A DNA stretch of 64,000 nucleotides. It comes from Pecten maximus (taxonomy: Eukaryota). The notes below the pieces were generated by a model. That model was not told the origin of the DNA. It ran no database searches and worked only from the letters and a program-made list of their open reading frames with translations. The stretch spans positions 4,774,001-4,838,000 of the forward strand of contig NC_047025.1 in NCBI RefSeq assembly GCF_902652985.1, in the 5' to 3' direction. The position numbers and the translations under genes were made by a program. Shown here piece by piece: positions 28,117 through 64,000 of this stretch. The stretch's first letter is position 1, and each line of letters starts with the position of its first letter.

Positions 28117-29164
28117 TAAGCTGCATCAGACTAATGTACTATATTTATATTTCATATACATACTACATGTACTAACATAATCGTGGGTGAGCTTATTTTC
28201 GTGTATCTTATCTAACAGGACGAATTCACAGAACAGTGAATGGACAGTTCACCAAGCTACATATATGTATACGTATATATTCATGCAGACTTTCTGTTTT
28301 ATATAAAAACACCAACCTCTGCTTATTTTCAAACCAATGCTTATATCAAATATGTTAAGGATCATAAGATTATAGAATAAACTGCCCTTTTCCTGTATCA
28401 GTCTCAGGTATTTAAAGCAACTAAAACACAACCATGAAGAATTTCCTTTTATGAAATAATATGTTAGATTCATTGATACCATTCAGGATTTAAGATTGAA
28501 TTCCGATCTATTATATAGCCTGAGAGTAGAAAAAGTTAATTATCCAAGAAAAGTTAATGAAAAGGTATTGTTCGTCGAATTAGTCCTGGTATTAGTACTT
28601 AGTTCATGGAAAGCAAATTCATTACCGCCTTTGAGATGTTCCCAAGATAAAATATCATAATCATAATCTTGAGTTGTCTGTTAAAGTAACAACACAACAA
28701 AAAACTACGAAATAAGTTTAAAATGTGAATTATTTGACTATTGTGTCAAATTGGCTAGTCACTAATCTTTGCTAGCCTATGGAAATATCTTTTACCTTCT
28801 CAAAAACTATAATCTCCTGAGTAACTCTCATAATTACATACAGATTTCATCTCCACACATACGAACGTTTTAAATCCCTTTATATATATTATATTTTAGA
28901 TATATGTCTCGTTATCTCATCTCGGAAATATAACCAGTTTTGACAAAGATAAAATGGCGGCTGATGCCGATGAAGCAGAAGATTTTTTTTTTCGGCACAC
29001 CTGGTCTAATGATCTTTCATTTTTAAGGGACTCCCGTGTGAGCTTTTATTTTGTTCATATTTGTCCTTACTTTATCGATTTCGAATTAGAATATTGGTTT
29101 TGTTTCTACGTCAATATTATCTTATTGTCTTTGTAGAGCTTACTAGCAGTTGAATAAGGAAATC

Positions 29165-31533
29165 ATGGCTGATCTCTGTAACAAGAAACCGCTGCTAAAA
29201 CAAGATTTGGACAACTTTCATTCGTTTTTCGATTTCGATATAACTAATCTGGATAGGGAACGCGTTGAAACCATAATCAAGAAGCTAGTTGATGACCGGG
29301 AAAACGCACCAAAGTCTGAAGACGAAGATATAAAGATAAGTAACTTTCTGTCATATTTGTATTTTTTGGTGCATCAGAAAGATCAAGCCCTACAGCTTCT
29401 TGAAGAAACCCTTCAGAAGGATCCTGATAATATCATAGCCAACGCAAATAAAGCCAGAATTCTACTGGAGAATGGGGAAGTTTCTGATGTGGAAGAAATT
29501 GTATCAAAACTAAAAAAATTAGAAAAAGAAAACGACTATGGCAAAAGAAAATGTTATGCCGAAGCGGATCTTGCGTACGCGTATGCAAGGTCGGGTCCTT
29601 GGTACCATCAAAGGGCGATAGAACTGTACAGAAGACTTGTGAAGGCATATCCCACAGAATGCGCGTGGCAGTTTGGACTTGGTTTGACTTTACTCAGGCA
29701 GACTTGCGAGTATAATTCACCGGCAGATATCGAAAATGGGACGACATTGGTAGATGCCGCTGAGAGGTTGTTAGCTGCCACGAAATCTAACGATCCCACT
29801 CTGAGTGCGAAAGCATATGCTGAACTTGGCAGAGCAGTGTTCACAATTAAGGAACGAGAGTACAGCAACCTACCACCAAATATAAAGAGTTTAAGGGATA
29901 AGGATTGCTTTGAAATGGCATTAAAAATATGTCCAGAGGAGCCAGCAGTGTTGCAAATTAGTGGTCAATATGCGCGGTACAGAACAGAAATAGATCTATC
30001 CGAGAAACTCCTCAGGAAATCACTTCGAATGAAACCAACGCCTCAAGGATACCACCATCTTGCTCTTACATTAAAAAGAAAGGTAGAAATGGATGAAGAA
30101 CACTCAACTGAACGAAACCGCCCAGAGCAATCAGTAGACCAGGATGGGTTTACTATTGTAAAACGCAAAGAAAAAAAGAGGTCGCCACATCCGCCTGACG
30201 TAAAGAGACGCAAACTCCGTCAAATGATAAAGTCCCCATTGACGGTTCAAATTCACCCAGAGAACAAATCTCTCGAGGAGGCTATATACTTGATCGATAA
30301 AGCAATCGAGCTGGATCCCTGTATTTTGAATATACAGTACGATAAGGGCATTCTATATCGAATGTTAGGCGAAACCGCAAATGCGGTGGATGTTTTCAAA
30401 CATATTATCTCCAAAAGAAAAAGCCTTCCAACCAAAACCCTGATGACCAATGTCTATGAACAACTTGGACTTTGTCTGCTAGAACTGAGTGATTCGAAAG
30501 AAATACCTCCTGATGAAAAGACGAAATACAAGAAAGATGGTCAATCTCATCTTTCACACGCCCTTCAACTTCAATCGGAGATAGTAGCAAACGATCCACA
30601 TTTCAAAGAGGCGTGGAACTCCTATTCGACACTAAAGAACTGTTGAGTGATGAAAGTGAAGGGAAGCCAAAACAACTGGCCGTTCTACACATGCTCATGG
30701 CGGATCACAGAGATTCAATCGCAATTGATACGGAATTAAATGAGAAAGACAAAATGGAGCCAGACGACTGCAAAAACATGTTGAAATGTTACACGAAAGT
30801 TGGCCAGTTTGAGGAATGTGTTACCCTTCTAAGTTCATGGGAGTGTACAACAATGTTTGCGAGACTTCCTGAGTCTTTGATCTTTGATGTGTATATCAAA
30901 GGCGCATTTCACGCCTTCTCCACTAATAACGCACAAATAGCGTACAAACACTTCAGACGAGCATTTAAAGTGTACGACATGTTCAACAAGGGCACTCACA
31001 TGCCAGAGGTTGACGAAGAGGAACAAACAAAAGACATACTAATATTACACTATTGTTCAGAAGACTGGAGATGCGAATTTCCAAAGAATCTCGGAAAGAT
31101 TCTAGGAGACTGTACGGGATTACGGTATACCATCAACTCTAACGACGTGCTCGGGAATGCGATCACTACGGAATCGATGGTTTCCATGATGAAGAAGATA
31201 CCTTGTATCATTATCATGACCCATGACAGTGCAGACAATTATGACAAATTCTATGTCAACCACGCTCTCCAGATGAGTTCAGAGAAAGAGGGACCTAGAG
31301 TTTTGGCAGTGTCAGACGACAAATGCAATGTACCTGATATTGCCAGAACAATATATTTTATCCGGACGCTTCCTCTGCTAAAGGGTGAAGCCATCCGGAC
31401 CCATCCAACGTTAGAGGTTGCTATACAACCGCTCGATCAGAAACCAGATAAGTTATCAGAGATGGAGTTAGGATGGGTGAAAGATTTCATTTATCTACTG
31501 AAGGATCAGCACCATAAGGGACGGTTTACGTGA
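29165..31533 (+). CDS. TPR-TIR protein paralog 1 (IFIT/TTC22-like TPRs plus C-terminal TIR-like domain); one 1-bp deletion at ~30634-37; ~789 aa if repaired
   Basis: Acceptor ttgtag at 29131-36, atcATGG start with in-frame upstream TAG; TPR helices (DPDNIIANANKA, GYHHLALTL, YDKGILYRMLG); TIR-like KDILILH...GLRYTINSNDVLG...CIIIMT...YVNHAL...RVLAV...VPDI; ORFs 29150-30646 and 30613-31533 join when compared with paralog 3. Confidence 0.8.
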
Positions 31534-31549
31534 TAGAACGCGTCGTGAC

Positions 31550-32840
31550 TTGTGTCATCAATGAGCAGTTAATCACCATCACTTGTTACACAATGAACAG
31601 TTTCGCGCAATCGCTTTTCTCATCAATAAACAGTTTTGCGTAACCAATTATTACATAAATGTATAGTTTTGCGCCATCAGTTCTATTCATCAATGGACAG
31701 TTTTGCGTGCTTACCTTTTTTTTTAAATGAACAGTTAATCATCCTCACTTGTTACACAAGTGAACAGTTAGGTGTCATCACTTATTACAGCAATAAACAT
31801 TTTCGCGTCGTCACTTCTAACAGTGAACAGTTTCGCGTCATGACTTGTCATACCAGTGAACGTTTCGAGTCATAACTTTTATTCATTAATGGACAGTTTT
31901 GCGTTATCGGTTGTTTTCATCAATGAACAGTTTCGTGCCATCACCTATTTTCACCAATGAACAGTTTCGTGCCATCGTATGTTTCATCAATGAACAGTTT
32001 TGCCTCATTACTTGTTTCAACAGTGAAAAGTTTCGTGTTATTGTTTGTTACATCAATGAACAGTTTCGCGTTATCATTTGTTTCAACAATGAACAGTTAA
32101 TCATCATCACGTGTTACCCAAATGAACAGTTTTGCGTCATCACTTCTATTCATCAATGGACAGTTTTGCTTTATTGCTTGTTTCATCAATGAAACTTTTC
32201 GCGTCATCACTTGTTTCACTAATGAACAGTTTCGCTTTATTGTTTCGCTAATTAATTGCTTTATCACCTGCTTCATTAAGGAACTGTTAATCATCATCAC
32301 TTGTTACACATGTGACCAGTTCTTTGTCATCACTTGTTACAATAAGAAACTGTTGTTAAATCATTGACCAGTTTTGCAGAATTCCTTGTTACAACAGTGA
32401 ATAGTTTCGTGTCCTCGTTTATTACAGCAGTTTTGCATAATCAAACGTCTCACCAATGAACAATTTTGCGACATCGCAACATGTTCCGGCATCACTTCTA
32501 AAGACAAACAGTTTCGCGTCATGACTTGTCACAAAGTGAATGTTCAATTGACACGTTTGTTCATTAATGGACAGTTTCGAGTCATCACTTGTTTCAACAA
32601 TAATTTATTTGAAGTTATCACTTGTTAAATCAATAACCATATCATTTCGCGGTAAATAATTCCGGTTTTTACAGCGGTGAACAGTTTCGTCTCATCATTT
32701 TTACAACAATGAACAGTTCCCGGTCCTGACTTATTTTTACAGTGAAATATTTCACGTCATCACATGTTTCACTAGTGAAAAGTTCTATGTCATTGTTTTT
32801 CTCACTAATGAACAGTTTCGCATCATCACTTGTTTCACCA
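31550..32840 (+). repeat. Degenerate 33-bp array downstream of paralog 1 (AATGAACAGTTTCGCGTCATCACTTGTTTCATC)
   Basis: Starts just after the stop codon; same family downstream of all four paralogs. Confidence 0.9.
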
Positions 32841-33323
32841 AAGTACGACGGCCCATATACGCCTCTACAAAATACACATAAGCACTAAAGATTTGTCCGC
32901 ATTCCTAAAATGCGTCGTCGAAAAACTGCATATGCATCGGACACATTTCATCGTCATATTTTGCCTTGCTTTTTACTTATTTTGACAACGCAATGCTATC
33001 TACCATTTGATAAACCCTGACAGCCTGATGACGCACAGGTGGATCATGGATGCATCATTCAATTCTTCGTCCATTTTGACTGCACGAATCGTTTTCCTGT
33101 GGTTTTTGTATTACTAAGTGGATTAGCCTTAAATTGATCTCCTTGTTCAAAACAATTTTATGTTCAAAAACAAATTCACATCTCTTAACTTAAAAACACA
33201 TGCCTAACATCACTGGTTTGTTCATATAAATTGCAGATCGAGTGTCACTGATTTGTTACCCATTCTTGTGTTGACGATGTAGTATATAATCCTACTTTTC
33301 TATTTTACTGAATTATTATTCAA

Positions 33324-33833
33324 GGGTGTACTCTTCTGTTGTTGCAATCACATTAAAGTGTTGTGTATGTAGGTTGTATGGGTATTACGATATCACATTG
33401 TACAATCTAGGGGAGATAATCTAACTCCATATGTATATGAGTTATTCCCCTTTGTAGTAATTCTTTTCGCTTGTAAGATACATTTTGATGATTCATAAAA
33501 AAACGTGGAACAGGAAAGACGTTTGTGGTTTTGCTTGACGATATGTAACGTCATTTTCGCAAGCATCCATACATATTTGACAACAAATATGGAAGATATT
33601 TTATGGTTTTGTCATGCAAAAAGTAAAAACAGTAAAATTCACTTATAATCACATATTATATCAAATTTGTATCTTTGACCCCGCCATAGCACTAAAAAGA
33701 GCACACAGACATATAAAGGTAACTTCTTTTCGCATTTTCTGCTACGATATTAACCTTTTCCAAAAATGTAAACGATGAAAAATTTTAATACAGGAATTCA
33801 TTTTTTACTTTTTACTTTTAGAGGTGTACATCC
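33324..33833. mobile_element. Possible TTAA-targeting (Kolobok-like) MITE
   Basis: Imperfect TIR GGGTGTACTCTTC / GAGGTGTACATCC (10/13); TCAA on the left, TTAA on the right. Confidence 0.4.
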
Positions 33834-34539
33834 TTAAACGCCAATTATAATAGACGCCATCTCTTTGTAAACTTTTTTATGAAAATTAACTGTGTTGCCT
33901 ATTCCCGAAAATATATCTTATGATCACTTGTCTAAAGAAAACTATAATAACAGATTAAACATATTCGACAGAATAATTGTGATAGATTGCAAACAATAAT
34001 TCGCCGTTTCTTTCTATGCAAAAACCAAAAGTTACATATTCTTTACATTATTATCATCCTCCAAAAGTTAGTCTCACTTTCTATCTTTTGAATTTAGGTG
34101 GATATATAATTAATTGAATACCGAAGAAATTCATTCGTTATAACTTGAATGCGACTTGCACTTGTATAGGCTTTCCTTATCAGGAGGCTGTTATTATTTT
34201 TTCTGTTGGTGTTAATAAGATATATTTCTATATCACAGTTGCGATTCCATGTATTTTTTGACAACCAGTATATACTATTTGTCGATATGACAAAATTTGT
34301 TAAAATTATCTTTATTGAGAGGGAAGTAGTATATGCTGTACCCTGTACAAACTATATACCTCTGCATTGTTTGTGTTCCCGTAAGAAGCTGAATATATTG
34401 AAGAGCATATATCAGAACCAGTAACTGAGACCATGCAAAGTCGATCTCACTTATAGGTATTATGACGATGTATAATCATTAAATAAGAAAACAAAAAAAT
34501 AAATAAATATATAAATTAACTATATCGATTGGATATAGC

Positions 34540-35010: not shown

Positions 35011-35039
35011 CCTTGTACTTTTTCATACCTAGATTAGTA

Positions 35040-35410
35040 TATAGGCCTTCATACCAAGACGTGTGTATGGGCCTTCATACCAAGACGTATGTATGGGTTT
35101 TCATACCAAGTCGTGTGTATGGGCCTAAATATCAAGACGTGTGTATGGGCCTTTATACCAAGACATGTGTATGTATTTTCATACCAAGACGTGTGAATTT
35201 GCCTTCATACTAAGACCTGTGTATGGGCCGTCATACCAAGACGTGGGTATGGGCCTTCATACCAAGATCTGTGCATGGGCCTTCATACCAAAACGTGTGT
35301 ATGGGCCTTCATAAAAAAATCTGTGTATGTGCCTTCATACCAAGATCTTTGTTTGTGCCTTCATACGAAGACGTATGTATAGGCCTTCATACCAAGACCC
35401 GTGTATGGTG
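35040..35410. repeat. 26-bp minisatellite GGCCTTCATACCAAGACGTGTGTATG, ~14 copies
   Basis: Direct periodicity. Confidence 0.9.
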
Positions 35411-37496: not shown

Positions 37497-37688
37497 TATA
37501 TACAACTTTCTCACAACTAACATACTCATACATACACTCTGAATCAGGTGGTCTGCAATCCACAAATACTACAGAGTATATATCCGGCAATCTTCCAATG
37601 ACGTAACCTCTAACATAGAAAGTTGTTACACTCCAGACAAAGGTTGACAAGTCAAGTTTATGTATCTGTCCACAAAGAACTGCTCAAC

Positions 37689-37955
37689 GTTATATCCGCC
37701 CACACAGGACATATGGAAGTATGGTTGACCACAAAGGTCTGTATACAGTTATATCCGCCCACACAGGACATATGGAAATATGGTTGACCACAAAGGTCTG
37801 TATACAGTTATATCCGTCCACACAGGACATATGGAAATATGGTTGACCACAAAGGTCTGTATAAAGTTACTTCCGCCCACACAGGACATATGGAAATATG
37901 AAGATATGGTTGCCCACAAAGGATATAACATTACAATCTGCCCACACAGGACTTC
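37689..37955. repeat. 59-bp tandem repeat, ~4.5 copies
   Basis: GTTATATCCG at 37689, 37748, 37807. Confidence 0.9.
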
Positions 37956-39765: not shown

Positions 39766-40901
39766 GTAACGATATCTTACTGATATTATATAGTCTTTTT
39801 GATTATATAACAATATGCTGTATCTCTTAAAGCAAGTATTTTTATTTAGATACTAGTTGTAGTACTCCCCTTAGCAACGATATGTTTGTCATTACGTCAT
39901 GGGTATGTGCATTATATACAGGTATGTGTAGATCATTGTGTTGCTGTGTGGTATTTTCGTCCAATCCAGTCACAGGAGTTCCTATGATCCGGTCCGGTTT
40001 CTTTCCACGTCGTATTTAGTTTTGTCAGAAAAGGTCTTTAGTTTCCACATTTCTTCTATGCCAGGTATACTTAGTTTGTATACTGTTTCATGTTTCGAAG
40101 CCTTGAGATTGGCCGCGATATCTTAGTCAGTTAGAGCGTCTGCCACGTAACGTAAGATGGAGAGCCGTGGAGCGTGGTAATAGTAATAACGACAGTAAAG
40201 ACAAGTACGTTGTTGAATTTTGAGACAATCTGCATTTTTACCAAGACACAAATACACCACAAGCGATCACATACCGACAAGTTACGAATAAACATATCTA
40301 GTAGATGAACTACGAACAACGTCGTCGTGTTTTGCTTGTGCTCATAATCCGTACTGTCGATAACTAGTTATTAACTAGACCGAAGGGATCATTGACACTG
40401 CCAATACTCTGCACAGTGTTTTTCCTGATTCATCTACTAGTTTTACATGATGTAACTGTTTCATGTTTCCGAAGAAATACTTCAATTTTGCTCTTTGTCT
40501 TTACCTTGACGTTACTATTAATTTGTTGTGACATTGATCAATTAATATATATATATATGGAAATTACGTCCTTTAAACACAAATTTTAATGGATTGCCAA
40601 GATTCGACGAAAGTACTAAATACGTGTTGTCGAGTTCTTCTTTTACTTAATGTATTACTTTGTCCATAGGTATTACAGTATTTAACCAAAATTGAATTGA
40701 TGTCGATGAAGCAGAAGACGTTTACCTTTCTGGAGCACCTGGTCTGATTTTGTTTCGTTTTAAACGGATTCCCCTGTGAATATACATATTGCTCATTTTG
40801 TCCTCGCCTTATTTTGTTTGAATCAGAATATCGGTTTGGTTTTCACGTCATTATTCTCTTGTTATTGTTGTAGAGCTTACTTGAAGATCCTTAAGGAAAT
40901 C

Positions 40902-43032
40902 ATGGCTGGTTTGATACAACTAATCTGACTAAGGACCGCGTAAGAAGCTTGATAAAAACTCTAGAAGATGTACGGAAATACACAAGAAAGTCGGATGAAG
41001 AAGATGTCAAGATAATTAACTTTCTGTCATATTTGTATTATTTGTTGAAAGAAAAAGAAAATAGCCTACAGCTTCTTGATGAATCTCACCAGAAGGAACA
41101 TGATAATATCATAACCAACTCAAACAAAGCAAAAAGCCTGCTGGAGAATGGGGAAGTTTCTGAAGTGGAAGAAATAATATCAAAACTCCAAGAATTAAAG
41201 AAACGGAACGTTTATGAAAAAAGGAAATATTACGCAGAAGCATGACTTAGCATACGCATATGCAAGATCGGGTCCTTGTTACAATGAAAGTGCGGTAGAA
41301 ATGTTCAGGAGAATTGTGGAGGCATATCATAAAGAATACACGTGGCAGCTCGGACTGGGTTTGACATTACTCAAGCGGAATCATCCCTTTCCTCATCCAG
41401 CAGATAGCAAAAATGAGAAAACAACGATAGATGCCGCTGTAAAGTTGCTAGCTCCCACGGAATCGGACGATCCCATTCTACCATGTCAAACTTGGCAAAG
41501 CAGTGTACAGCATTCGGACAAAACAATATAGAGATCTACCACCTGAAATAGAGAATTTAAGGGACAATACATGTTTTGGAAAAGGATTGGAAATATGTCC
41601 AGAAGAACCATTGCTGTTACAGATCTGTGGCCAATATGCGCGGTACAGAAAAGAATTTGATACATCCGAGAGACTCATTCGTAAATCACTTCGAATCAAA
41701 CCAACGCCTCATGGATACCATCATCTTGCTCTTACATTAAAAAGAAGGGTAGACATGAGAGGGGGACACAACCATGGTTTTAGGGAAATAATATACAGCA
41801 GGGAAAAATCTGGATTCCAACAAGGTTGTAATTATAGAGTAGCGAGGTCGCCACAATCGCCTGACGTACGGAGTGGAGGACATATGCATATGCATTATGA
41901 CAAAGGCATCCTATATAGAATGCTGGACCAAACTAAAAAAGCCGTGGACAAACAAAAAGTCTCCAAAAAGAAATATCTCCTGACACATACATGGTTGACA
42001 CATGTTTATAATCAGCTTGGAGTTTGTCTCTTAGAATTAAGTGAGTCGAAAGAAACACCTTCAGAAATCAAGCAGAAGCACAGAAAAGATGGCCAAATAT
42101 ACCTCTCACGTGCTCTTCAGATTCAATTTGAAATTGTCGCAAACCATCTGCAGTTCAAAGAAAAATTTAACTCCTATTCAACTCTAAAAGAACTAATGAA
42201 TGACAAAAGGAATGGGAAACCACAAGGACTGATAGTTTTGTGCATGCTCATGCGGGATCATATGGACAATATTGACAACTTCAATGACTTATGCATGACG
42301 GAGGAATGCAAGTTGGTGCCAGACAAATCTATAGCCATGCTTCAAGGTTACATGAAAGCTGGACAACTTGAAGACTGTGTTACGCTTTTATGTTCCCTAG
42401 AGTGTACAACAATGTTTGCGAGACTTCCTGAGTCTTTGGTCTTTGAGGTGTACATGAATGGTGCATTTCACGCCTACTCTACGGATAACGTACAACTAGC
42501 GTACGAACGCTTTAGACGTGCTTTCCACGTATACGGCATCTTCGGCAAAGTCAGTTACAAGACCGAAGCTGACGAAGGCGAGGATACGGAAGAAATACTA
42601 ATATTACATTCCTGTTCACTAGGTTTAATATGCAGACTTCCAAGAGATATCGGAACGATTCTAGAAGACTGTACGGGATTACGGTATACCATCAATACTG
42701 ACAACGTGCTCGGTAATGCGATCACAACAGAAGCCATGGTTACCTTGATGAAGAAGATACCGTGTATCATTATCATAACCCACGATAGTGAAGACAAATA
42801 TGACCAACTATATGTCAATCACGCTCTCCAGATGAGCTCAGTAAAAAATGGTCCTCAAGTCGTGGTCGTTTCAAATGACGAATGTAACGTGCCAGATATT
42901 GTCAGAACAAGAGGTGTACCAATAATCCCGATGCCCCCTTCGTTAGATGACGCCATGCGACAAAACGATCAGATCCCAGATAAGCATCAAGAATGGGTGA
43001 AGCAATTTATCGAAAAACTGACACCAAATTAA
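40902..43032 (+). pseudogene. TPR-TIR paralog 2, pseudogene
   Basis: Same acceptor/ATG context (tag 40871-73, ATG 40902); frameshifting deletion just after ATG, 1-bp insertion ~41243, frameshift ~41480, internal deletion before YDKG; TIR-like domain readable to 43032. Confidence 0.85.
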
Positions 43033-43359: not shown

Positions 43360-44090
43360 GAATGTTACACCAGTGAAAAATTTCGTGCCAGCACTTGTTG
43401 CACTATTGGACAATTCAGTGTCAACACATGTTAAACCAGAGAACAGTTTCGCGTCATCACTTGTTAAAACCAGTGAACAGTTTAGTGTCATCACTTGTTA
43501 AACCAGTAGACAGTTTCGCGTCATCACTTGATAAACCGGTGAACAGTTTTGTATCATACATGTTAAACCAGTGAACGGTTTCACGTCATCACCTGTTAAA
43601 CCAGTGACCTGTTTCGCGTCATCACTTGTTAAACCAGTGAACAGTTTCGCGTCATCACTTTTTACACCAGTGAACAGTTTCACGTCATCACTTTTTACAC
43701 CAGTGAACAGTTTCGTATCAGTAGTTGTTACACCTGTAAACAGTTTCGTGGCATCAATTGTAACACCAGTGAACAGTTTCATGTCATCACATGTTAAACA
43801 AGAGAACAATTTCGTGTCATCACTTGTTAAACCAGTGAACAGTTTAGTGTCATCACTTGTTAAACCAGTGAACAGTTTAGTGTCACCACTTGTTAAACCA
43901 GTGAACAGTTTAGTGTCATCACTTGTTAAACCAGTGAACAGTTTAGTGTCATCACTTGTTAAACCAGTGAACAGTTTAGTGTCACCACTTGTTGCACTAG
44001 TGATTAGTTTCCAAGGATTATTTGTTTTGTCAATGAACAGTTCCTCGTTATTAATTGTTACGCCCGAGAATATTTTCGCGGCATCACTTT
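43360..44090 (+). repeat. 33-bp array downstream of paralog 2 (ACCAGTGAACAGTTTAGTGTCATCACTTGTTAA), recently homogenised
   Basis: Exact 33-bp periodicity; explains ORF 43571-44110. Confidence 0.93.
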
Positions 44091-44834: not shown

Positions 44835-45190
44835 TTGTATAAATCATGTTTATAATCACAATAGTATATACACCCATTAATGATTTTATCATGCATTTAA
44901 TGTCTAGTATAGTATAAATCATGTTTATAATCACAATAGTATATACACACATTAATGATTTTATCATGCATTTAATGTCTAGTATAGTATAAATCATTTA
45001 TATAATCACAAAATCATATACATGTACACTGATTAATCTTATCATTATATATTTATTATCTAGTATAGTATAAATCATGTATATAATCACAATTATATAT
45101 ATCAATTAATTATTTAATCATGAATTTAATGTTTAGTATAGTTTAAACTTTCTTGTATATAATCAAAATGTATAAAACCCTAGTATAGTA
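44835..45190. repeat. ~75-bp AT-rich tandem repeat
   Basis: GTATAAATCATG recurs at ~75-bp spacing. Confidence 0.85.
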
Positions 45191-50362: not shown

Positions 50363-53244
50363 GTTACGACATCTTACTCATATTATATATTCTTATTGAC
50401 TATGTAACAATCTGCTGTATCTCATAAAACAAGTATTTAAAAAGAACAATCGTTACATTTCCCTTAGCAACGGTGTGTTTGTCATTACGTCATGGGTAAA
50501 TGCACTATATACAGGTATGTGTTGATGTGTGGTATTTTCGTTCTATCAAGTTACAGGGGTTTCTGTTATCTGGGTTGGTTTCTTCCCTTGACGCATCAAG
50601 TTTTGCCACAAAAGGCTTTAGCATCCCTTAATCTTTAGTTACATCAAATGCATTTTCTCAATTGTCGAAATTTGACAAATACCTTACAAACGATGTAGGA
50701 TACGCACCAAGCAACAATCACACAACGAGCATATCAGACTCAAATAAACACAACGTGGAATATGAACAACACAGGCATAACACAAAGAGCCATAATGAAA
50801 TTAGTCATCAAACAAATTCAAATTTACAGGACGACCCATCAGATTTATTGGTATTTGTCAAGAGTATGAATTAAAATCGAAGTCTGATCCAATATAAATG
50901 TCACAGGGCATTTTTCTCAATGAACAAATTCAAAACGTCCTGCTGGTTCGAATATTTTCATTATTAGACCGGAGACATACAATAGGAATGAAACCTGCAA
51001 TACAAAAGGCCTGAATTAATCAAATGGACAAAAGTAGGCAAAATCTGCCGAAGTAGTTAATAAATTTTCAATTAATTTAGTTAAATATTTATATAGATTT
51101 TTACGACTACATTACGTCACATGAGTTAAGATAATAATTACCTTCCAAAACATCTATATGTCCAGTAAAATCATGTCAATGTATCGGGCTGGGCCGTGTC
51201 GACGGGACACCAGAGGATGTGCTCCGTCGCCCGAGTAAGGCCAACTGCGAGTTACCGCGGTGTACGAACGGTTTTGTTTAACTTGCACTCGAACTTGTAC
51301 GCTTTTTCTCAAATCACCCATTTGATTTACATATAACTTGTCAACAACACCAAATACGGACATACAGAAATAGACGACTACAGGTAAGACACCACACAGG
51401 ACTATAAATAGTAACACGGTACTTTCCACACTACAATACACAGGTGACAAACGTACAACACAACCCAATACTATAAACTATCTAACTAATAACATTATTT
51501 AATACATTATGTTCCAGTGTCATATTCCAGTAAAGTAAAATTCATGAAGAATTTCTTATTTAACTGAAAACTGTTGGCTAACAATTTGAGGGACTTTTCA
51601 CCATCCTCTGACACAAACAAGACAAGACTTAAAGGTTAAATATATATAAAAAAAAAACCGGTGTAAATTATTTTCCGTTGTCCATCAAGTCGATTCGCGA
51701 ATTATGAGTGTTATTGTCAACTTGTTGGATTGTGTTGTGTGCATGTGTTTATGTTTTGTCTTGTGACCTCTGACCCTTTTCAACCCATTAACGTCACGTG
51801 TCAAGGTTTTAGCAAACACCGAAAATAGCCTTTGTCACTTTGATAATGATTTTGATGTAGAAAATAAACTAGATTTTTGACAGAGGAATCCGGCTGCTTG
51901 TTTTGTGTTAGTCCTCTGTCCTAACTCATATCGGTACTATTTATTTGATACAAACCAGGCAGAGGGATTGAAAATTGTAATATGTGTAGAAAACACTTGA
52001 GACATTTGATAGTCACTCTTGTGCATTGTAAGATTTTGACATAATTGACCACTGCGGCATTGTACATGGGCCAAGGTCATTCAGATTGTCTAAGTTAAAA
52101 GCCCATTGCATATCAGCATTTTTTTCACTGTTCGTTTCACACAATTACCTTGCTTAAAACCGCCAGTTGATGTTTTACAAATTTTCATTTCTTTATTTTC
52201 TACTATTAAATACATAGAATAAATTGAATACATTCATCCGCTAATGAGGTATTTTAACTACACCTAAAATCGTATATGACGTAATGGCATTGAGAAAAAG
52301 ACTAAGAAGCAATATCAGAAACTTAACAATTCCAAACGGTCTTTTCACCAGTAGGTGTCATTTGGCCAATACGATCACCAGTAGGTTAAAGGACCTCAAA
52401 GGAAACACAACAATTCCAAACGGTCTTGTCACCAGTTTATTATCTAGGATGTAATCTAAATTAATCATTCTAATCTTGAGATGTCTATTATAGTAACGAC
52501 ACTTGTACTTGACACTTTTATCAAATTGGCGACCTGTCACAAACCTATGTCGTGACATATATCTCTAGAGTTCATCAAATTAACTTAAAATCTCCCGAAG
52601 AACTCTCAGAACCTTTCTATGTCTGACCTCCACATACAAGAAAGATCTTAAGACTCTCTATAGATAATGTGTTCTATATATAATAATAATAAATAACTTC
52701 AAAAGAAAACTGGTAATATCCCGAACGCTTTCGAGTCTGTTCAAATGTCGCTCTTCACAAGGACTGTTCATCTTATATATATATAGAAACACAACTGACG
52801 ACGGGAGACAGCTTTTACCAATGCGCCACATCCGCGTTCTTAAAAAGAACATTTAAATAGCACATAAATGACACATTGATGGTCGGCCCGATACCCCAAC
52901 ATAGCATATTGTCAAGTAGTCTATTAGATGATATGAATATCTTGATCGCAATGCATATACATACATGGATGCGAATTTTACTTATATTCAACACAGTATA
53001 ACGTATTTTGTAAAGGCTAGTAATTTCGTTGTCACTATCTCGTTTCTCATTTTGGAAACCTAACCAGTCTTTCTCAAATAAATGGTCTTATTATCTTTTA
53101 TTTTAAACGGACTCGCGTGTGAATATGTTTTTGGTCATATTTGTCCTCGCATTATCTAGTTTGAATATTATTATTGCTTTTGTTTTCACTTCATTATTAT
53201 TGTTTTGTTCTTTTAGAGCTGACTGGAAGTACCATAAGGATATC

Positions 53245-55616
53245 ATGGCTGCTCTCTGTAACAAGAAATCGCTTAAACAAGATTTGGACAACTTTCCGTC
53301 AACTTTCGAATTTGATACCACTTATCTGGCTATGGACCGAGTAAAAAGCATAATCAGGAAGCTAAATGATTACCGAACGAACACAAGTACGACCGAAGAC
53401 GAAGATATAAATATAACCAACTTTCTGTCATATTTGTATTTTCTGCTTGATGACCAAGAACATGCACTACAGCTTGTTGATGACTCTCTTCAGAAGGATC
53501 CTGATAATATCATAGCCAACGCAAACAAAGCCAGAATTCTACTGGAGAGTGGGGAACTTTCTGATGTCGAAGAAATCTTATCAAAACTCCAAGAATTAAA
53601 AAATGGAAACGATTATGGCAAAAGAAAATGTTATGCCGAAGCGGATCTTGCGTACGCGTATTCAAGGTCGGGTCCTTGGTACCATGAAAAGGCGGAAAAA
53701 CTGTACATCGACATTGTGGACGTATATCCAACAGAATACACGTGGCAGTACCGACTTGGCTTGACTTTACTCAGGCGGACTCACCACTTTCATTCACAGG
53801 CAGTAGGCGGACACAAGAAGAGAACTGTAGATGCCGCTAAGAGGTTGCTAGCTGCCACGAAATCCAACGATCCCATTTTATGTGCGAAAGCATATGCTGA
53901 ACTTGGCAGAGCAGTGTTCAAGTATTGGTAAACGTATGAATCAGCGACTTACCACCAGAAATAAAGCAGTTAAGGGATAAGGAATGCTTTGAAAAGGCAT
54001 TAGAAATATGTCCAGAAGATCCATCAGTGTTACAGACATGTGGTCAATTTGCGCGGTACAGAAACGACTTGGACGAAGCCGAGACACTTCTTCGCAAATC
54101 ACTTCGAATTAATCCAACGTGTCATGGATACCACCATCTTGCTCTAACATTAAAAGACAGGGTAGCATTGGGAGTAGAAAATTCACATGAAGAAAACTTT
54201 GTAGAAGAATCAGGATACAGTTGTGATTTTCAGTCTACGGTATTCGACAGTGACGAATCAGTACACCAGCAGGGTTTTAATGATAAACCACGAAGCAGGG
54301 AGGAGAGAAGGTCACATTCCTCTGACGTACAGAAACGTAATCTCCGTCAAATGATAAAGTCCCCATTGACGGTTCCAGTTCAACCCAAAAACAAATTACT
54401 TGTGGAGGCTATAGGATTGATCGATGAAGCAAAAAAAATGAACTCATATACATTGATCATGCAGTACGATAAGGGCATTCTATATCGAATGTTAGGTGAA
54501 ACCGCAAAGGCTGTTGATGTTTTCAAACAAATAATCTTTAAAAGAAAATGTCTTCCCACCAAAACCCTGTTGACTAATGTCTATGAACAACTTGGACTTT
54601 GTCTTTTAGAACTGAGTCAATCGAAGGAAATACCACCTGATATAAAGACGAAATACAAGAAAGATGGCCAATCTCATCTTTCTCATGCTCTTCAACTTCA
54701 ATCGGAAATAGTAGCAAACGATCCTCAGTTCAAAGAGGCGTGGAACTCATATTCAACACTCAAGGAACTGTTGAGTGATGAAAGTGAAGGGAAGCCAAAA
54801 GAACTGGCAGTTCTACACATGCTCATGGCGGATCACAGAGATTCAATCGCAATTTATAAGGAATTAAATGAGAAAGACAAAATGGAGCCAGACGACTGCA
54901 AAAACATGTTGGAATGTTACATGAAAGTTGGCCAGTTTGAGGAATGTGTTACCCTTTTAAGTTCATGGGAGTGTACAACAATTTTTGCGATACTTCCTGA
55001 ATCTTTGATCTTTGATGTTTATATTAATGGCGTCTTTCACGCCTACTCCACTGATAACGCACAAATAGCGTACAAACACTTCAGACGAGCATTTAAAGTG
55101 TACGACATGTTCAACAAGGACACTCACATGCCAGAGGCCGACGAAGATGAGAAAACAAAAGATATACTAATATTACACTCTTGTTCAGAAGACTGGAGAT
55201 GCGAATTTCCAAAGAATCTCGGAAAGATTCTAGGAGACTGCACGGGATTACGGTATACCATCAACACTGACGACGTGCTCGGGAACGCGATCACTACGGA
55301 ATCGATGGTTTCCATGATGAAGAAGATACCTTGTATCATTATCATGACCCATGATAGTGATGACAAATATGACCAACTCTATGTTAACCAAGCTGTCCAG
55401 ATGAGCTCAGAGAAAGGGGGACCTAGAGTTTTGGTAGTGTCAGACGACAACTGCAATGTACCTGATATTGCCAGAACAATGCCTTTTATCCGGGCGCCTC
55501 CACCGCTAGAGGGCGCTATCCAACTGCCCGATCAAACACCAGATCAGTTACCAGAGAAACAGATAGAATGGGTTAGAAAGTTCATCTATCTACTGAAAGA
55601 TCAACACCGTAAGTAA
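53245..55616 (+). CDS. TPR-TIR protein paralog 3; net +2 frameshift at ~53920-43; ~789 aa if repaired
   Basis: Acceptor ttttag 53211-16, atcATGG; ORFs 53119-53931 and 54027-55616 are collinear with paralog 1; 23 nt versus 21 nt in paralog 1 at the lesion. Confidence 0.8.
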
Positions 55617-55639
55617 CGGTTTACGTGATCGAAGGCGTC

Positions 55640-56110
55640 ATCAAATGTTTCTTCTCTTAAAAGTTTCGTATCATCTCTTGTTTCATCAATGACCAGTAAA
55701 TTGTCATCACTTGTTATTTATGAACAGTTTCGTGTCATCATTAGTTTAATGAATGAATAGGTCCGCTTCATCACTTGTATAATCAATGAACAGTTTCACA
55801 TCGTCGCTTGTTTCATCAATGAACAGTATCGCGTCATCATTTGTGTCTTCAATGAATAGTTCCACGTAATCGCTTATTCAAAGAATATCTAGTCGTCATC
55901 ACTTGTAACACCAATGAACATTTTTGCGTCATCGCTTGTGTCAATAAGGAACAGTTTCAAACCTACACTAGTTTCACCAAAACAATTTCGCGTCATTACC
56001 TGTATTACCAATAAATAGATAATCATCATCATCACTTGTTCAACAAAGAACGTTTTCGCGCCATCACTTATTAAAGTGCTTAATGATTTGATCATTTGTT
56101 TCACCAAAGA
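55640..56110 (+). repeat. Degenerate 33-bp array downstream of paralog 3
   Basis: AATGAACAGTTTC...TCATCACTTGT units. Confidence 0.85.
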
Positions 56111-57039: not shown

Positions 57040-57554
57040 TTAATTAGTGAGAAAAATGGAACATTTAGTATAGAGTAAAGGGGACCAATAACATCCTGTA
57101 AAACCTTTTGATATTCATTTATCCAGATCAAAAGGTACACTGATCGTTCATCAGAAGGCAATGTATATTGTATTTGGATTATGTTGCATGTGAAAAGGAA
57201 TATGCTTTACTATTATTTCTTTAAATGTACAACCGAAAGTCAAAAGAAGAATGTTTCGACAACATAATTTCTACTGTATTACAAGTATTTAGAAATACTA
57301 GATTTGTAAAAGTCGAAATATTTTGCGATAGCGATACTTCCTTAGAAGGAATAAGTCAACTCTACAATCGACATATTGTAAATGCATGAATATATACTTT
57401 AAAATGTTCTTCTTATGCCAGCCTTCCTGTACTTATCTTATGGTTGGAATACTATAACAGATTATAGATATATAACATGTAAATACGATAATCAAACAAT
57501 CTATTTATTAATGTATTTATTTTATATGAAAATACATTTACAAAATTATTTTTA

Positions 57555-57930
57555 ATGAGAGGAAAGAATTTTATGATGAACATGTATAAACCTCCATTTC
57601 TACATCCTGATTTTGTTACATACGAACTGATTACATTAAAGCTTATATCAGAACAGGTAACAGATATCGTACAAAGTCCATCAAGTCCACTCAAAGGTAT
57701 ATTGACGATGTGTTATCTTTTGTTAAAAGGCGATCAGATATACCATGTAGAACTTGAAATCTAGGACACTCTCAATGACTCATAAACACCAGCCGCCCAC
57801 CTCGATCTTAATTCAAAACGTAGCTGTAATATCTAATGTTCTATTTTGCGATAAGGAAAAATTCCTGTTTCCTCAAACAATGGTGTTTATATATCCCAGT
57901 TTATCCGATATTTAAAGACTTATTCCTATT
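57555..57930 (+). mobile_element. Penelope-like RT relic, paralogous to 47220-47860
   Basis: RYIDDVLS catalytic motif at 57695-57718, IYHVELEI, AAHLDL, GVYISQFIRY. Confidence 0.78.
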
Positions 57931-60327
57931 ATCATGGCATATGTTGATTTCGATTTACAGTTATTTTGTTGTTATGTCATTATTTGTTATGCCTATACAG
58001 CTTATTCCGTACACTACATCAACGATTTTAGTCCACCGAGCCCAACACGAGTTGACTTAGGGTGTTTCACCTTCTTGTGCCAGATTTTCTCATTTGAACA
58101 ATTCTTTCTCAATAATTAGAATGCCTTTTGTCCCGATGTTTTACTAACATTACTATTGCTGAAATAAATTATCTTTGTCATGTTATTTACGTCAAAGTGG
58201 TGAATTTTAGTACGAACCTGTGAAATAGGTATTACCTTACTGAAGATCATTACTAATGTGTATAACCTGACCTTATTGATAAATCCTCTAATACAGCCTT
58301 ATTAGTAGTACAGAATAGCCAAAGAGCTACGCTTGTCAGATTTTAATCTGCAGTTAACCAAAGATTTTGTTCTGACGTTTATGCCACCTTCTACTGCTAG
58401 ATATGGATATACAATTAAATCATTCAAAACAGACAGTCCAGTGAGCTTTTATGCGTTTGTAAATAATGACACGTCATTGGAATGTATCAAGCTTTCTATA
58501 CTATACTGCAATAAAGCTCTGGCGTTCTGCTTGACTGGGTAGAAGTGTCTTACTATGCCCATTTCATAAACCCGGATTTTCTTAATTCTTATTACCACCA
58601 TCCGGGTACGTAACCATTATTGGTGGCTGTATATTGTATGGTTGGAAATAGAAAAAAATCAGAGAGAAAAGCGTATAAGAGAAATTCCAGAGTATCGCCC
58701 GTCTAACAGGTTAACAGTTGTCGGCTCGCTGAAGACCAAAGTAAATCTCTCATGAATAAAATTCCAGTATAACAACGGCACCGCCCTCTACATTCCCAAC
58801 TATCTCAAACCTTACTTCAACTTCTTCCTAAGAAATCATGCTGTTAGTGGGAGATAACTTGTAATTGTAATGTTTGTGCTGAACTCTCCTATGTTGGAGA
58901 TACAAAAGAGAACAAATAAACTGAAGAACATGACACACGGTCTATTTTTGTCAATTCAATTGAAGAGTCACAGATATTCATGCCATCAATATATATCCTT
59001 CACAGAGTCCTCATGGATTGCCAGCTCATAGTCAATCGTAAACATTATAAAATAATGTCCATGTTTAATAGATGCAAAAACAGAAAAACAAACAAAACAA
59101 AAGCTGATAATGTGCAGATACAGTCAGCAGGGATATCTTTAGATTGTTCCTCTTTATACGTCGAATCATAACCGTAATCGTAGAAGACGTGGATACCAGC
59201 TTTAATATTCGCAACACTGAGAGGAAGCCTTGGGTCAAATATCGTGGACACGCATGGCGAGTTCTATAAGGCCTTCAGATAATCTATCCGGCTCGATTAT
59301 TCCTCTTGATACTTTCAGTCATTAACATTTGATACCAGCTGCAATAGTCGTTACATTGAGAGGAAACATCGTGGACAAGCATGGCGAGTGGCTCAAGATA
59401 TTGTATCCGGTTAGACTACTAATGAGGAAGTTTAACGAAACATTTGAGAGGTAAAAACAAAAAAATAGAGTTTGAGGTCTACTGTATCCCGAACTGGACA
59501 AATTCCGTACAGTTAGTTGCATCTGAATTCTAGATCAGCGGCTCTTCGCAAGGACTGTATAATATTGGGAAGGTCGAAATAATTATACATTATTTCTCAC
59601 TGCGTTTCACCGAAAAAATAATATTACTTCTCCATCACATTATATTAAGCCATAGTTTAGTATACTCGTTACCAGAGACAACACGGGAGGTTTTTCTTAT
59701 GCATCCAACGAAGTACGTCATTTCAAGTTATGTACAGGATCAACATGTTATACTAAGATCAAATTAATTGATAGATGATGGGGATTTTTTGTGTTGTTGA
59801 TTTCATATTAAGATATTAATTTCTATATTTGTATTATACTTTTTGATGTTTTGATGGACAGCTATTAAACCAAACCAAACATCTTTTCAATATTTTCCTC
59901 CAAGACACGGACATGTTAATGCATTAAAAATAAATTTCATTTTGCAGTTCTATGATTTTGACATCGAGTAGGCTATATTCTGGTTATACCGTGGTGACTT
60001 AACTTCACATAAAAGAAGTAAGTAATTTAAGCAGTAATCAATTATACAAAGGAATTATTGAGAGGAGATCGACGGACCAGGAATACCTGTCCTGATGACA
60101 GTTTAAGGTAGATATATGAAGGTAGGACTGACAGACCAGGTTCACCTGTATTGTAGATAGTTTTAAGTAGATATATGTAGAATCATTGCATATATTTTTA
60201 GATATTCATTCACAGGTGTAATGAGTGAGGTATATATACTGCATCAGGGTATCAAGTTATGTCAGTCTCCTATCACAATTAGTTAGGGTGACGATTTCAC
60301 GTCAACACGACAGGCTTAGTATGATGT

Positions 60328-60510
60328 ACCGAGCCAAAACCAAAACTAAACCTGTACAGGTGTAAAACTGGTTCCGCGAAAAAGTTCACTCGGAACTCTC
60401 CAGATTTTACGTTTGGATGGTGAGACTGTCAGACCTGATATCGTGTCACCCGGACTAAACTGACTAGTTCGCTGCCACTACTATTGTTTTCCTTAGTCGA
60501 GATGGTAAGT
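60328..60510 (+). promoter_or_regulatory. Orphan upstream module plus exon 1 (GT at 60505) adjacent to the gap
   Basis: TTCCGCGAA 60372-80, GGAACTCTCC 60392-401, GAGATG|GTAAGT. Confidence 0.6.
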
Positions 60511-60538
60511 GTTACGACATATTATATATTCTTGTTAG

Positions 60539-61038
60539 NNNNNNNNNNNNNNNNNNNNNNNNNNNNNNNNNNNNNNNNNNNNNNNNNNNNNNNNNNNNNN
60601 NNNNNNNNNNNNNNNNNNNNNNNNNNNNNNNNNNNNNNNNNNNNNNNNNNNNNNNNNNNNNNNNNNNNNNNNNNNNNNNNNNNNNNNNNNNNNNNNNNNN
60701 NNNNNNNNNNNNNNNNNNNNNNNNNNNNNNNNNNNNNNNNNNNNNNNNNNNNNNNNNNNNNNNNNNNNNNNNNNNNNNNNNNNNNNNNNNNNNNNNNNNN
60801 NNNNNNNNNNNNNNNNNNNNNNNNNNNNNNNNNNNNNNNNNNNNNNNNNNNNNNNNNNNNNNNNNNNNNNNNNNNNNNNNNNNNNNNNNNNNNNNNNNNN
60901 NNNNNNNNNNNNNNNNNNNNNNNNNNNNNNNNNNNNNNNNNNNNNNNNNNNNNNNNNNNNNNNNNNNNNNNNNNNNNNNNNNNNNNNNNNNNNNNNNNNN
61001 NNNNNNNNNNNNNNNNNNNNNNNNNNNNNNNNNNNNNN
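60539..61038. other. Assembly gap (500 N)
   Basis: Run of N. Confidence 1.
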
Positions 61039-61299
61039 GTCGGGTTCTATCAAATGGTGTATAGCAAAGCTCGAAAAGTGCCAAGGCGGTTATGGGCCAA
61101 CACTGCATTGTCAAAATAAGCAAAAAGCAAAGCAAAATCTGATGATGAAATGTGTCCGACATTGGGCAAAAAAAAAACACACCTGCATACGCAGTTTTTT
61201 CGAGTACGCATTTTAGGAAACTGCGGACAAACATTTAGTACTTATGTGTATTTTGTAGAGGCGTATATGGGTCGTCGTACTTTGGTGAAACTTTTGAAG

Positions 61300-62590
61300 T
61301 GATGATGCGAAACTATTCATTAGTGAGAAAAATAATGACGTAAAACTGTTCACTAGTGAAACAGGTGATGACGCGAAATTGTTCACCGCTAAGTAATGAC
61401 CAGAAACTGTTCATGGTTGTAACAAAAGATGAGACGAAACTATTCACCGCTGTAACAACCGGAACTATTTACTGCGAAACTGTTAATTGATTTAACAAGT
61501 GATAACATCAAATAAAGTATTGCTTAAACAAGTGATTACTCGAAACTGTCCATTAATAAACAAAGGTACGAGTTGAAAACTCACTTTGTGACAAGTCATG
61601 ATGCGAAACTGTTTGCCTTTAGGAGAAGTGATGCCGGAATATGTTGCGATGACTCAAAATTGTTCATTGGTGAGGCATGTGATTACGCTAAACTGCTGTA
61701 ATAAGTGATGACACGGAACTATTCACTGTTGTAACAAGGAATTCTGTAAAACTGTTCAATGATTTAACAACAGTTCATTATTGTAACAAGTGATGACACA
61801 GAACTGGTCACATGTGTAACAAGTGATGATGATTAACAGTTCATTAATGAAACAGGTGATGACGCAAAACTGTTAATTAGCGAAACAATCAACCGAAACT
61901 GTTCATTAGTGAAACAAGTGATGACGCGAAAACTTCGAATGATGAAACAAGCAATAAAGCGAAACTGTCCATTGATGAATAGAAGTGATGACACAAAACT
62001 GTTCATTTGGGTAACACGTGATGATGATTAACTGTTCATTGTTGAAACAAATGATAACGCGAAACTGTTAATTGATGTAACAAACAATAACACGAAACTT
62101 TTCACTGTTGAAACAAGTAATGAGGCAAAACTGTTCATTGATGAAACATACGATGGCGCGAAAATGTTCATTGGTGAAAATAGGTGATGGCACGAAACTG
62201 TTCATTGATGAAAACAACCGATAACGCAAAACTGTCCATTAATGAATAAAAGTTATGACTCGAAACGTTCACTGGTATGACAAGTCATGACGCGAAACTG
62301 TTCACTGTTAGAAGTGACGACGCGAAAATGTTTATTGCTGTAACAAGTGATGACACTGAACTGGTCACTGGTGTAACAAGTGAGGATGATTAACTGTTCA
62401 TTTAAAAAAAAAGGTAAGGACGCAAAACTGTCCATTGATGAATAGAACTGATGGCGCAAAACTATACATTTATGTAATAATTGGTTACGCAAAACTGTTT
62501 ATTGGTGAGAAAAGCGATCGCGCGAAACTGTTCATTGTGTAACAAGTGATGGTGATTAACTGTTCATTGATGACACAAGTCACGACGGGT
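61300..62590 (-). repeat. 33-bp array downstream of paralog 4; inverted homolog of 31550-32840
   Basis: Reverse complement is collinear with the paralog 1 3' flank (ORFs 62253-62492 and 31636-31875 are near-identical). Confidence 0.92.
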
Positions 62591-62606
62591 TTTATCACGT
62601 AAACCG

Positions 62607-64000
62607 TTACTTATGGTGCTGATCCTTCAGTAGATAAATGAAATCTTTCACCCATCCTAACTTTATCTCTGATAACTTATCTGGTTTCTGATCGAGCGGT
62701 TGTATAGCAACCTCTAACGTTGGATGGGTCCGGATGGCTTCGCCCTTTAGCAGAGGAAGCGTCCGGATAAAAGATATTATTCTGGCAATATCAGGCACAT
62801 TGCATTTGTCGTCTGACACTGACAAAACTCTAGGTCGGTTCCATTTCTCTGAGCTCAACTGGATAGCGTGGTTGACATACAGTCTGTCATAGTTGTCTGC
62901 ACTGTCGTGGGTCATGATAATATCACATGGTATCTTCTGCATCATGGAAATCATGGATTCCGTAGTGATCGGATTCCAGAGCCCGTTGTCAGTATTGATC
63001 TTAGAACGTTATCCCGTACAGTCTCCTTAAATCGCTCCGAGATAACTTGGAAATCCGCATTTCCAACCTTGGGAACAACTGTGTAATATTAGTATATCCT
63101 TTGTATCCTCGTCTTTGTCAGCCTCACTTTGGTCAGCAATGACCTTATCGAACATGCCGTAAAATTGAAAGGCTCGCCTGAATTGTCTGTGCGCTAGTTG
63201 TACGTTATCAGTCGAGTAGGCGTGAAATGCACCATTGATATACACATCAAAGACCAAAGACGGTGGAAGCCCCGCAAAATTTGTCGCACACTCCAATGAG
63301 GTTAAAAGAGTAACGCATTCTTCAAACTGCTTATCCTTCATGTAGCATTCCAGCATGTTTCTGTAGTCTTTGGGATCCATTGTTTATTTGTGCTTGGATA
63401 ATAATCCTTGTAAATGGCGATTGAATCTCTATGAACCCCCATGAGCTTGTGTAGAACTGCCAGTTGTTTTGGCTACCCATCACTTTCATCACTCGACGGT
63501 TCTTGGAGTGTCGAATAGCGGTTCCACAAAAAAGGTTGAGATTGATCATCGTTCTCGTATTTCCTCTTTTTATCAGGCGGTATTTCTTTCGAATCATCCA
63601 GTTCTAGGAGACAAAATCTAAGTTGTTCCTCGGCATAGGTCATCACAGTTTTGGTTGGAAAGCTTTTTCTTTTAGAGATTATTTGTTTGAAAACCTCCAC
63701 AGCATTTGCGGTTTCGCCTAACATTCTATATAGAATGCCCTTATCGTACTGTATATTCAAAATATTGGAGTCCAATTCTTCTGCTTTATCGATCAATTCT
63801 ATAGCCTCCTTAAGTAAGCTGTTTCCGGGATAAACTTGAACCTTCAATGGTGACTTCATCGTTTGATTGGGTCTCTTCCTTTTTTTGCCGCCTACACAAA
63901 TAAAACCATCTTCGTCTCCTGATTCTTCAGGGCGGTTTCGTTCAGTTGAGTGTCCTCCTGGCATTTCTACCATTTTTGCTAATGTAAGAGCAAGGTGGTG
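62607..64000 (-). pseudogene. TPR-TIR paralog 4, 3' portion, pseudogene; continues past the window
   Basis: HHLALTL...YDKGILYRMLGETANAV...TKDILILHSC...YVNHAI...LLKDQHHK; nonsense codons (TAG 63473-75, TAA 63027-29) and several frameshifts. Confidence 0.88.

Follow-up and report, generated by a model that had tools for sequence, protein, structure and literature searches.

The four gene copies at the locus

The stretch of DNA analysed here, which we call the window, covers 64 kb of the king scallop, Pecten maximus (contig C11, positions 4,774,001-4,838,000). It contains four paralogs of one gene family. Three of them, c1, c2 and c3, lie on the forward strand, and c4 lies on the reverse strand. 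We propose that they are four tandem duplicates of a mollusc-specific, unnamed family whose proteins join an IFIT-like array of tetratricopeptide repeats (TPRs) to a linker with TPR-like helices and to a TIR fold with a presumed role in signalling. We give this reading a probability of roughly 0.6.

Copy c1 occupies positions 29137-31533 of the window on the forward strand. Its acceptor AG is at 29135-29136, its ATG at 29165 and its stop codon at 31531-31533, and it holds 788 codons in two frames. Copy c3 (53217-55616, forward strand) has an acceptor, an ATG at 53245, a stop codon at 55614-55616 and 783 codons in two frames. Copy c2 (40874-43032, forward strand) is decayed. It keeps the acceptor and the ATG (at about 40902), and a 509-aa open reading frame (ORF) at 41503-43032 still covers the C-terminal TPR and TIR-like part. 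Copy c4 is a pseudogene on the reverse strand. Its 3′ end is at 62607, and it runs through position 64000 and beyond.

With c1 as the blastn query against the window, c3 is 81.6% identical over 2.5 kb, c4 78-84% and c2 73-76%. An earlier note on this DNA had described a cluster of four paralogs, and all four are recovered by blastn where it placed them. That description needs amending for c4, which lies on the minus strand and has its first 885 nt, including the ATG, past the end of the window.

In c1, c2 and c3, a polypyrimidine tract followed by AG lies 28 nt 5′ of the ATG. Copy c4, four further P. maximus paralogs, two Ylistrum genes and one Argopecten gene also have an acceptor, about 23-31 nt 5′ of their ATG. 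The acceptor is conserved in these three genera though the flanks have otherwise diverged. An unplaced relative, P0011, has the same feature 13 nt ahead of its ATG. The orthologues are uninterrupted single ORFs of 740-770 codons. Judged from the sequence, each gene appears to have a short 5′ intron followed by a single coding exon of about 750-1000 codons, and it is from the conserved acceptor that we infer splicing. The earlier note had claimed complete coding sequences that each lie in one exon. The acceptor and the single ORFs of the orthologues agree with the one-exon structure; completeness does not hold in the window, where none of the four copies has an uninterrupted coding sequence in the assembly.

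One further observation concerns P0011 (L031:290-370). Here a possible 12-nt micro-exon, AATCATAAAATG, preceded by AG and followed by GTAAGT, lies 45 nt upstream of the acceptor in front of the ATG.

Frame breaks and decay

The state of each copy was judged from its open frames and from a comparison with the intact paralog L067 (785 aa). Copies c2 and c4 are dead. Copy c2 has lost 62 nt directly behind the ATG, and its frame changes twice further on, at about 41244-41275 and at about 41480. Copy c4 carries in-frame stops at 63473-63475, 63027-63029 and 63009-63011, a frameshift at about 63384-63404 and an internal deletion.

Copies c1 and c3 are broken only once each. The break in c1 (30630-30638 on the forward strand, at about 30633) is a 1-bp deletion relative to the paralogs, ACACT[C]AAAGAAC. 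The break in c3 (53920-53945, forward strand) consists of two extra bases, a G in AAGTAT and a T in GAATCAG. They produce a TAA at 53929-53931, and the reading resumes in another frame at 53940.

These two breaks may be real null alleles or uncorrected assembly errors. At the c3 site, neither extra base is present in an Illumina-derived contig (X4) of a different individual, which stays in frame across the break as AVFNIGKRMNSDL. The marker word TGGTAAACG is unique to c3 among the family loci compared. At the c1 site, DNA contigs from three studies contain forms with an added C and forms with an added G. These forms could derive from paralogs, because two paralogs share the 28-nt context; sequencing runs were mapped as short contigs, and paralogs cross-map at 95% likeness. 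A search of the assembly for a haplotig of c1 found none, the closest copy being 88% identical.

The same pattern is seen across the genome. Seven paralogs have exactly one break each, all at different positions, and four are intact. Besides c1 and c3, the single-break paralogs are L002, L003, L006, L012 and L013 (C368, C11:3.465 Mb, 5.264 Mb, C721 and 6.254 Mb). One break per paralog is compatible with two origins, a large number of recent null alleles or long-read indel errors that were left uncorrected. Since the single break of many copies is possibly an assembly error, gene counts for such families in the P. maximus genome need care.

The strongest alternative to our reading starts from these breaks. 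The window could be a gene graveyard in which all four copies are non-functional, and function would then rest on intact paralogs elsewhere. An intact paralog does lie 26 kb to the right of the window (C11:4,862,814-4,865,168). Every copy in the window has at least one frame break, and there are several lesions in each of c2 and c4. No sequence in the young clade of c1 and c3 is open over its full length, and dN/dS (the ratio of nonsynonymous to synonymous substitution rates) between c1 and c3 is 0.53, at the top end of the family range. However, apart from one break each, c1 and c3 retain 788 and 783 open codons. A short-read contig from another animal is in frame across the c3 break, and in-frame forms occur at the c1 site as well. 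Seven single-break paralogs with breaks at different positions are also what uncorrected long-read indel errors would produce. Finally, RNA contigs match the 3′ end of c1 with 0-1 differences. We consider the graveyard a possibility to be taken seriously, although we lean against it.

Family distribution, turnover and transcription

At least 23 copies of the family are present in the P. maximus genome, four of them intact, and almost all map to C11 from 2.88 to 6.29 Mb. All named database matches are entries called "uncharacterized protein" from Pecten, Mizuhopecten, Argopecten and Ylistrum. Distant members with the same layout of TPRs and C-terminal region, likewise uncharacterized by name, occur in Saccostrea, Crassostrea virginica and Littorina. 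A search of 1.84 billion representatives with a profile of the C-terminal region returned 17 proteins, which come from scallops, oysters and Littorina. Ten of the 13 proteins that were new in this search were scanned with Pfam, and no domain was found in their C-terminal region.

EukProt entries labelled Digyalum oweni, a gregarine of periwinkles, share a 90%-identity cluster with the Littorina saxatilis member (P0023/P0038). They have the same length as the Littorina member, 886 aa, and are probably host RNA in a parasite transcriptome.

A tree of the C-terminal 280-300 residues places the Ylistrum sequences, the Mizuhopecten sequences and most P. maximus copies in species-specific clades. 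The same tree contains one older lineage of the c2 type that is common to P. maximus and Argopecten. Between genera dN/dS is 0.11-0.25, and between P. maximus paralogs it is 0.31-0.55. For the searches, c1 and c3 were each used as two separate in-frame pieces; for dN/dS the pieces were placed consecutively, with nothing added at the break. The sequence data fit purifying selection with fast turnover, as in birth-and-death evolution. This mode of evolution had already been suggested for the cluster, and it agrees with at least 23 copies of which four are intact, with species-specific clades and with paralog dN/dS values of 0.3-0.55.

In one RNA library, contigs match the c1 coding sequence and continue past its stop codon into the 3′ repeat, with 0-1 differences. 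Except for a high-copy repeat, the 2.6-kb upstream flank of c1 is free of RNA contigs. The contigs cover neither 29137-29408 nor 30633. The family is transcribed, with c1 possibly among the transcribed copies.

The N-terminal array resembles IFIT proteins and TTC22

The family protein begins with an N-terminal TPR array. Next come a linker, basic and variable, and more TPR-like helices, and then a TIR-fold domain of about 150 aa with a last helix. The protein has neither a signal peptide nor a membrane segment, hence it is probably cytosolic.

Pfam detects only generic TPR families in the N-terminal pieces. To compare the array with known structures, we built a profile from 13 full-length scallop, oyster and Littorina members of the family and searched all PDB sequences with it. 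IFIT5 (E = 1.1e-13) and IFIT1 (1.6e-13) rank first, and IFIT2 (4.2e-9) and IFIT3 (8.4e-7) are also found. The best other natural proteins are MamA (3.2e-7), BBS4, OGT and Tom71 (about 3e-7 to 9e-7). Over its N-terminal ~420 residues (profile positions 54-418) the family is colinear with vertebrate IFITs, across IFIT subdomains I-III, at an E-value of 1e-13: family positions 54-178 match IFIT5 49-186, positions 239-318 match IFIT1 228-308, and positions 365-418 match IFIT1 318-371. A word-indexed protein search with the N-terminal profile returned family members only and reached no IFITs.

A feature search of the ESM Atlas with the N-terminal 489 aa places clusters of TTC22 and of IFIT1, IFIT1B, IFIT2 and IFIT5 at the top, with a score of 0.96. 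These clusters share 202-212 of 256 features with the family N-terminus. TTC22 is the top named cluster (212/256), a likeness that comes from language-model features and not from an alignment. Together, the profile and feature searches support homology of the N-terminal array to vertebrate IFITs, with TTC22 and IFIT as its closest likenesses.

In IFIT5 the pocket for the RNA 5′ end is formed by K150, R186, Y250, R253, Y254, R260 and Q288, and mutation of K150, R186 and R260 strongly lowers RNA binding (PMC9677429). The scallop family keeps basic residues at the positions of these three mutations: the columns of K150, R186 and R260 are occupied by an invariant or near-invariant Arg. The column of H287 holds an invariant His. 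The column of Y250 is aromatic in oysters, Ylistrum and Argopecten, and Ala or Ser in c1 and c3. Because the basic residues at the K150, R186 and R260 columns are conserved, an RNA 5′ end is a plausible ligand, and RNA binding by the array is plausible on the same sequence grounds.

The gene arrangement is similar too. IFITs are two-exon genes in clusters, and as in the scallop family nearly the whole coding sequence lies in the last exon. The ATG of the scallop genes, in contrast, is in the large exon, whereas the ATG of IFIT genes is in the first exon. Vertebrate IFITs consist of TPRs only and are about 470-490 aa long, while the scallop family has about 300 further residues, namely the TPR-like helices and the TIR-fold domain. 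TTC22 likewise differs from the scallop family in having no TIR domain. The vertebrate genes are, to our knowledge, treated as interferon-driven RNA binders without a signalling domain, and we know of no interferon system in the scallop host.

The likeness to TTC22 suggests another explanation. The proteins could be housekeeping TPR scaffolds without any immune role, and their copy number would then change neutrally. It is true that the ESM Atlas gives TTC22 clusters the same high score as IFIT clusters, and that none of these genes is mentioned in the searched literature. Housekeeping genes, however, rarely occur in more than 20 tandem copies that are mostly broken, form species-specific clades and have dN/dS values of 0.3-0.55. 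The fusion to a TIR-fold domain also points to signalling or defence rather than housekeeping. We therefore regard a housekeeping scaffold as unlikely.

The C-terminal domain is a divergent TIR fold

Behind the TPR-like helices lies an alpha/beta domain of 110-150 aa, followed by a final helix. In c1 the TIR-like domain and its C-terminal helix occupy 31009-31530, and in c3 the domain, whose sequence was used for modelling, occupies 55137-55613, both on the forward strand.

Sequence searches do not reach known TIR domains directly. A profile of the domain has no match among PDB sequences, and family members have no tblastn match to 30 canonical TIR loci of P. maximus. We modelled the domain with AlphaFold 2, using an alignment of 30 sequences. 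The models are mutually consistent, with predicted local distance difference test scores of 76-79 (mean 78.6 for one of them), and show five beta-alpha units in order plus the final helix. In the c3 model the strands are formed by residues 10-15, 40-42, 66-71, 97-102 and 117-119, and the final helix by residues 140-158.

A VIA-align comparison of the domain model with 48,161 PDB chains puts TIR domains at all of the first 12 ranks, with Z scores of 10.0-11.8. The highest score belongs to IL-1RAcPb (Z 11.8, root-mean-square deviation 3.2, 131 aligned residues). It is followed by TRIF (11.5), SARM1 (11.4), TIR-1 (11.3), IL-18Rbeta (11.2), RPS4 (10.6), TRAM (10.6), MyD88 (10.3), TIRAP (10.1) and the Crassostrea gigas TIR-STING (10.0). 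Outside the TIRs, CheY-like receivers reach at most 8.4. Foldseek with the domain-only model also has the TIR of IL-1RAcPb as its top match; with a 282-aa two-domain model it returns a mixture of TPR, Rossmann and TIR matches. For the C-terminal domain the ESM Atlas lists TIR clusters at 0.88-0.91.

Profile-profile alignment points the same way. With hhalign we aligned the family domain to 12 canonical TIR_2 domains taken from P. maximus genomic sequence. The whole domain aligns in register, at a global score of 26.9 (P = 4.3e-5). As controls, 20 column shuffles score at most 6.9 and the reversed alignment scores 2.2.

Compared with metazoan TIRs (IL-1RAcP, TRIF, MyD88, TIRAP and SARM1/TIR-1; Z 10.1-11.8 over 121-135 aligned residues), the family domain has the same order of strands and helices. 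At the BB loop behind strand B, where the TIR motif is R-D-x-x-P-G, most members outside P. maximus read D-D-x-x-P, namely those of oysters, Mizuhopecten, Littorina, one Ylistrum gene and P0011 (with PG in P0011). Scallop members have a Trp in the last helix at the position of TIR box 3, and the other members have none there. The differences are just as clear. Identity to metazoan TIRs is 12-16%, and the family stays under the Pfam thresholds for TIR and TIR_2. The family domain also lacks the conserved Glu of helix C: in the global hhalign alignment, which is of low confidence in this stretch, the Glu column holds Tyr or Phe and no Glu is conserved nearby. Unlike metazoan TIRs, the family has a set of its own, His-x-Cys-x5-Cys...His. 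These residues (H14, C16, C22 and H72 in the numbering of the c3 domain) are near-invariant, being present in at least 90% of 30 sequences, and sit at the C-terminal ends of strands A and C. They may form a metal site in place of the active-site region usual in TIRs.

The idea that the domain is instead a family-specific metal-binding or enzymatic flavodoxin-like domain without TIR-TIR signalling is quite improbable: H14, C16, C22 and H72 are indeed conserved at the usual ligand site of such folds, no Pfam TIR match is significant and the TIR glutamate column is aromatic, but the 12 best structural matches are TIRs that score 2-3 Z units above CheY-like folds, the family profile aligns in register with that of real TIRs and scores above its controls, the BB-loop Pro is kept in most members outside P. 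maximus and the box 3 Trp in scallops, and the Littorina member lacks both Cys.

We predicted a complex of two copies of the TIR-like domain. The score was 0.00 with controls not run, so it speaks neither for nor against self-association.

Weighing the reading and a possible mechanism

Several observations weigh against an IFIT-like array fused to a signalling TIR. In the assembly, none of the window copies is uninterrupted. The short RNA contigs may stem from paralogs, and some of their loose ends match other paralogs. IFIT5 R253, Y254 and Q288 are not conserved in the family. A Pfam TIR scan of all pieces and of 17 domain sequences gave nothing significant, the best result being TIR_2 with an E-value of 0.076, in two of the 17. 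The flavodoxin-like fold is common, and the TIR relatives SEFIR, ThsB and deoxyribosyltransferase reach Z 9.8. The hhalign probability is just 32-42%. The BB loop of Argopecten and of every P. maximus copy reads D-D-V-L-G-N, with Gly in place of Pro.

How did the domain calls of the earlier note fare under these comparisons? Its IFIT/TTC22-like N-terminus is borne out, with IFIT5 and IFIT1 first and colinear in the PDB profile search and TTC22 and IFIT clusters on top in the ESM Atlas. Its TIR call stands as far as structure and profile alignment go, since the best structural matches are all TIRs and hhalign is above its controls; a significant Pfam TIR model is missing. It had proposed AlphaFold with Foldseek as one check, and this yields a five-strand alpha/beta model with a TIR as the top Foldseek match. 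It had also proposed a Pfam scan, which finds the TPRs and leaves TIR and TIR_2 below significance. As statements about fold and family likeness, both domain calls are thus supported, and we take the C-terminal domain to be a divergent TIR-fold domain.

If the proposed reading is correct, the protein might work as follows. The IFIT-like clamp would bind a ligand, plausibly an RNA 5′ end. The TIR-like domain would then relay the signal through TIR-TIR assembly, scaffold-style as in MyD88 or TRIF. A role of the TIR-like domain as an NADase is unlikely, because aromatic residues occupy the column that corresponds to the TIR glutamate. From the sequences it is reasonable to regard the protein as a putative immune sensor coupled to TIR signalling.

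A bolder version can be formulated. The protein would be a mollusc one-protein cytosolic receptor in which the IFIT clamp senses non-self RNA 5′ ends, the fused TIR provides the output and the His-Cys-Cys-His metal site stands in for the NADase Glu. We regard this full version as rather unlikely. If it is true, the IFIT fold predates vertebrate interferon and was first a sensor wired to TIR signalling.

The combination of TIR and TPR is not new to bivalves. Zhang et al. 2015 (PMC4346834) described a "TIR-TPR" class in oyster, within an expanded set of non-canonical TIR genes. Like the family described here, these bivalve proteins combine TIR and TPR (PMC4346834). The oyster class, however, is defined by a detectable TIR, whereas the oyster members of the scallop family have no Pfam TIR match; the two sets may overlap. 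Neither an IFIT-TIR fusion nor the family loci were found in the searched literature, although the bivalve TIRs of Gerdol et al. 2017 might list the family.

What the reading adds is that bivalves and a gastropod have an IFIT-like array, and that it is joined to a TIR fold which standard domain scans miss. If confirmed, the family is a candidate for nucleic-acid recognition coupled to TIR signalling in animals without interferon. It would also add a hidden class to the inventory of mollusc TIR genes.

The assembly gap and the intergenic repeats

The window contains a single run of N, an assembly gap at 60539-61038 that lies outside all copies. We rejected the reading that this gap breaks a gene: c3 ends at 55616, the 3′ end of c4 is at 62607 and no copy spans the gap. 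Instead, the gap marks a duplication/inversion joint. On its left, the intergenic segment 47214-50397 is duplicated at 57553-60536 (73-95% identity), and this second copy stops at the gap. On its right lies the inverted c4 unit, whose 3′ flank is 87.7% identical to the 3′ flank of c1 as far as 61101, 63 nt right of the gap. Hence the inverted orientation of c4 and its distance from the other copies depend on scaffolding.

A minisatellite with a 33-bp unit lies 3′ of each of the four copies. It occupies 31577-32245 after c1, 43363-44011 after c2 and 55635-56069 after c3, all on the forward strand, and 61769-62587 after c4, on the reverse strand as the reverse complement. The arrays have 13-25 units of about CATCACTTGTTACACAATGAACAGTTTCGCGT and lie about 20-50 nt past the stop codon in c1, c3 and c4, and about 330 nt past it in c2. 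The same minisatellite is also present behind the paralogs L067 and L068 and is missing behind L066 and L070. One Ylistrum orthologue has a related repeat on its 3′ side. Because an RNA contig extends from the c1 stop codon into the repeat, the minisatellite of c1 is probably part of the 3′ untranslated region.

An Rfam scan of the region from 26 to 64 kb gave no match. Other tandem repeats lie between the copies at 35022-35408, 37689-37900 and 44837-45174, with periods of 26, 59 and 75 bp. Upstream of c1, at 27639-27992, lies a very high-copy repeat that is also present in RNA contigs. In DNA contigs from three studies its summed word depth is 5,000-45,000, compared with about 40-150 beside it.

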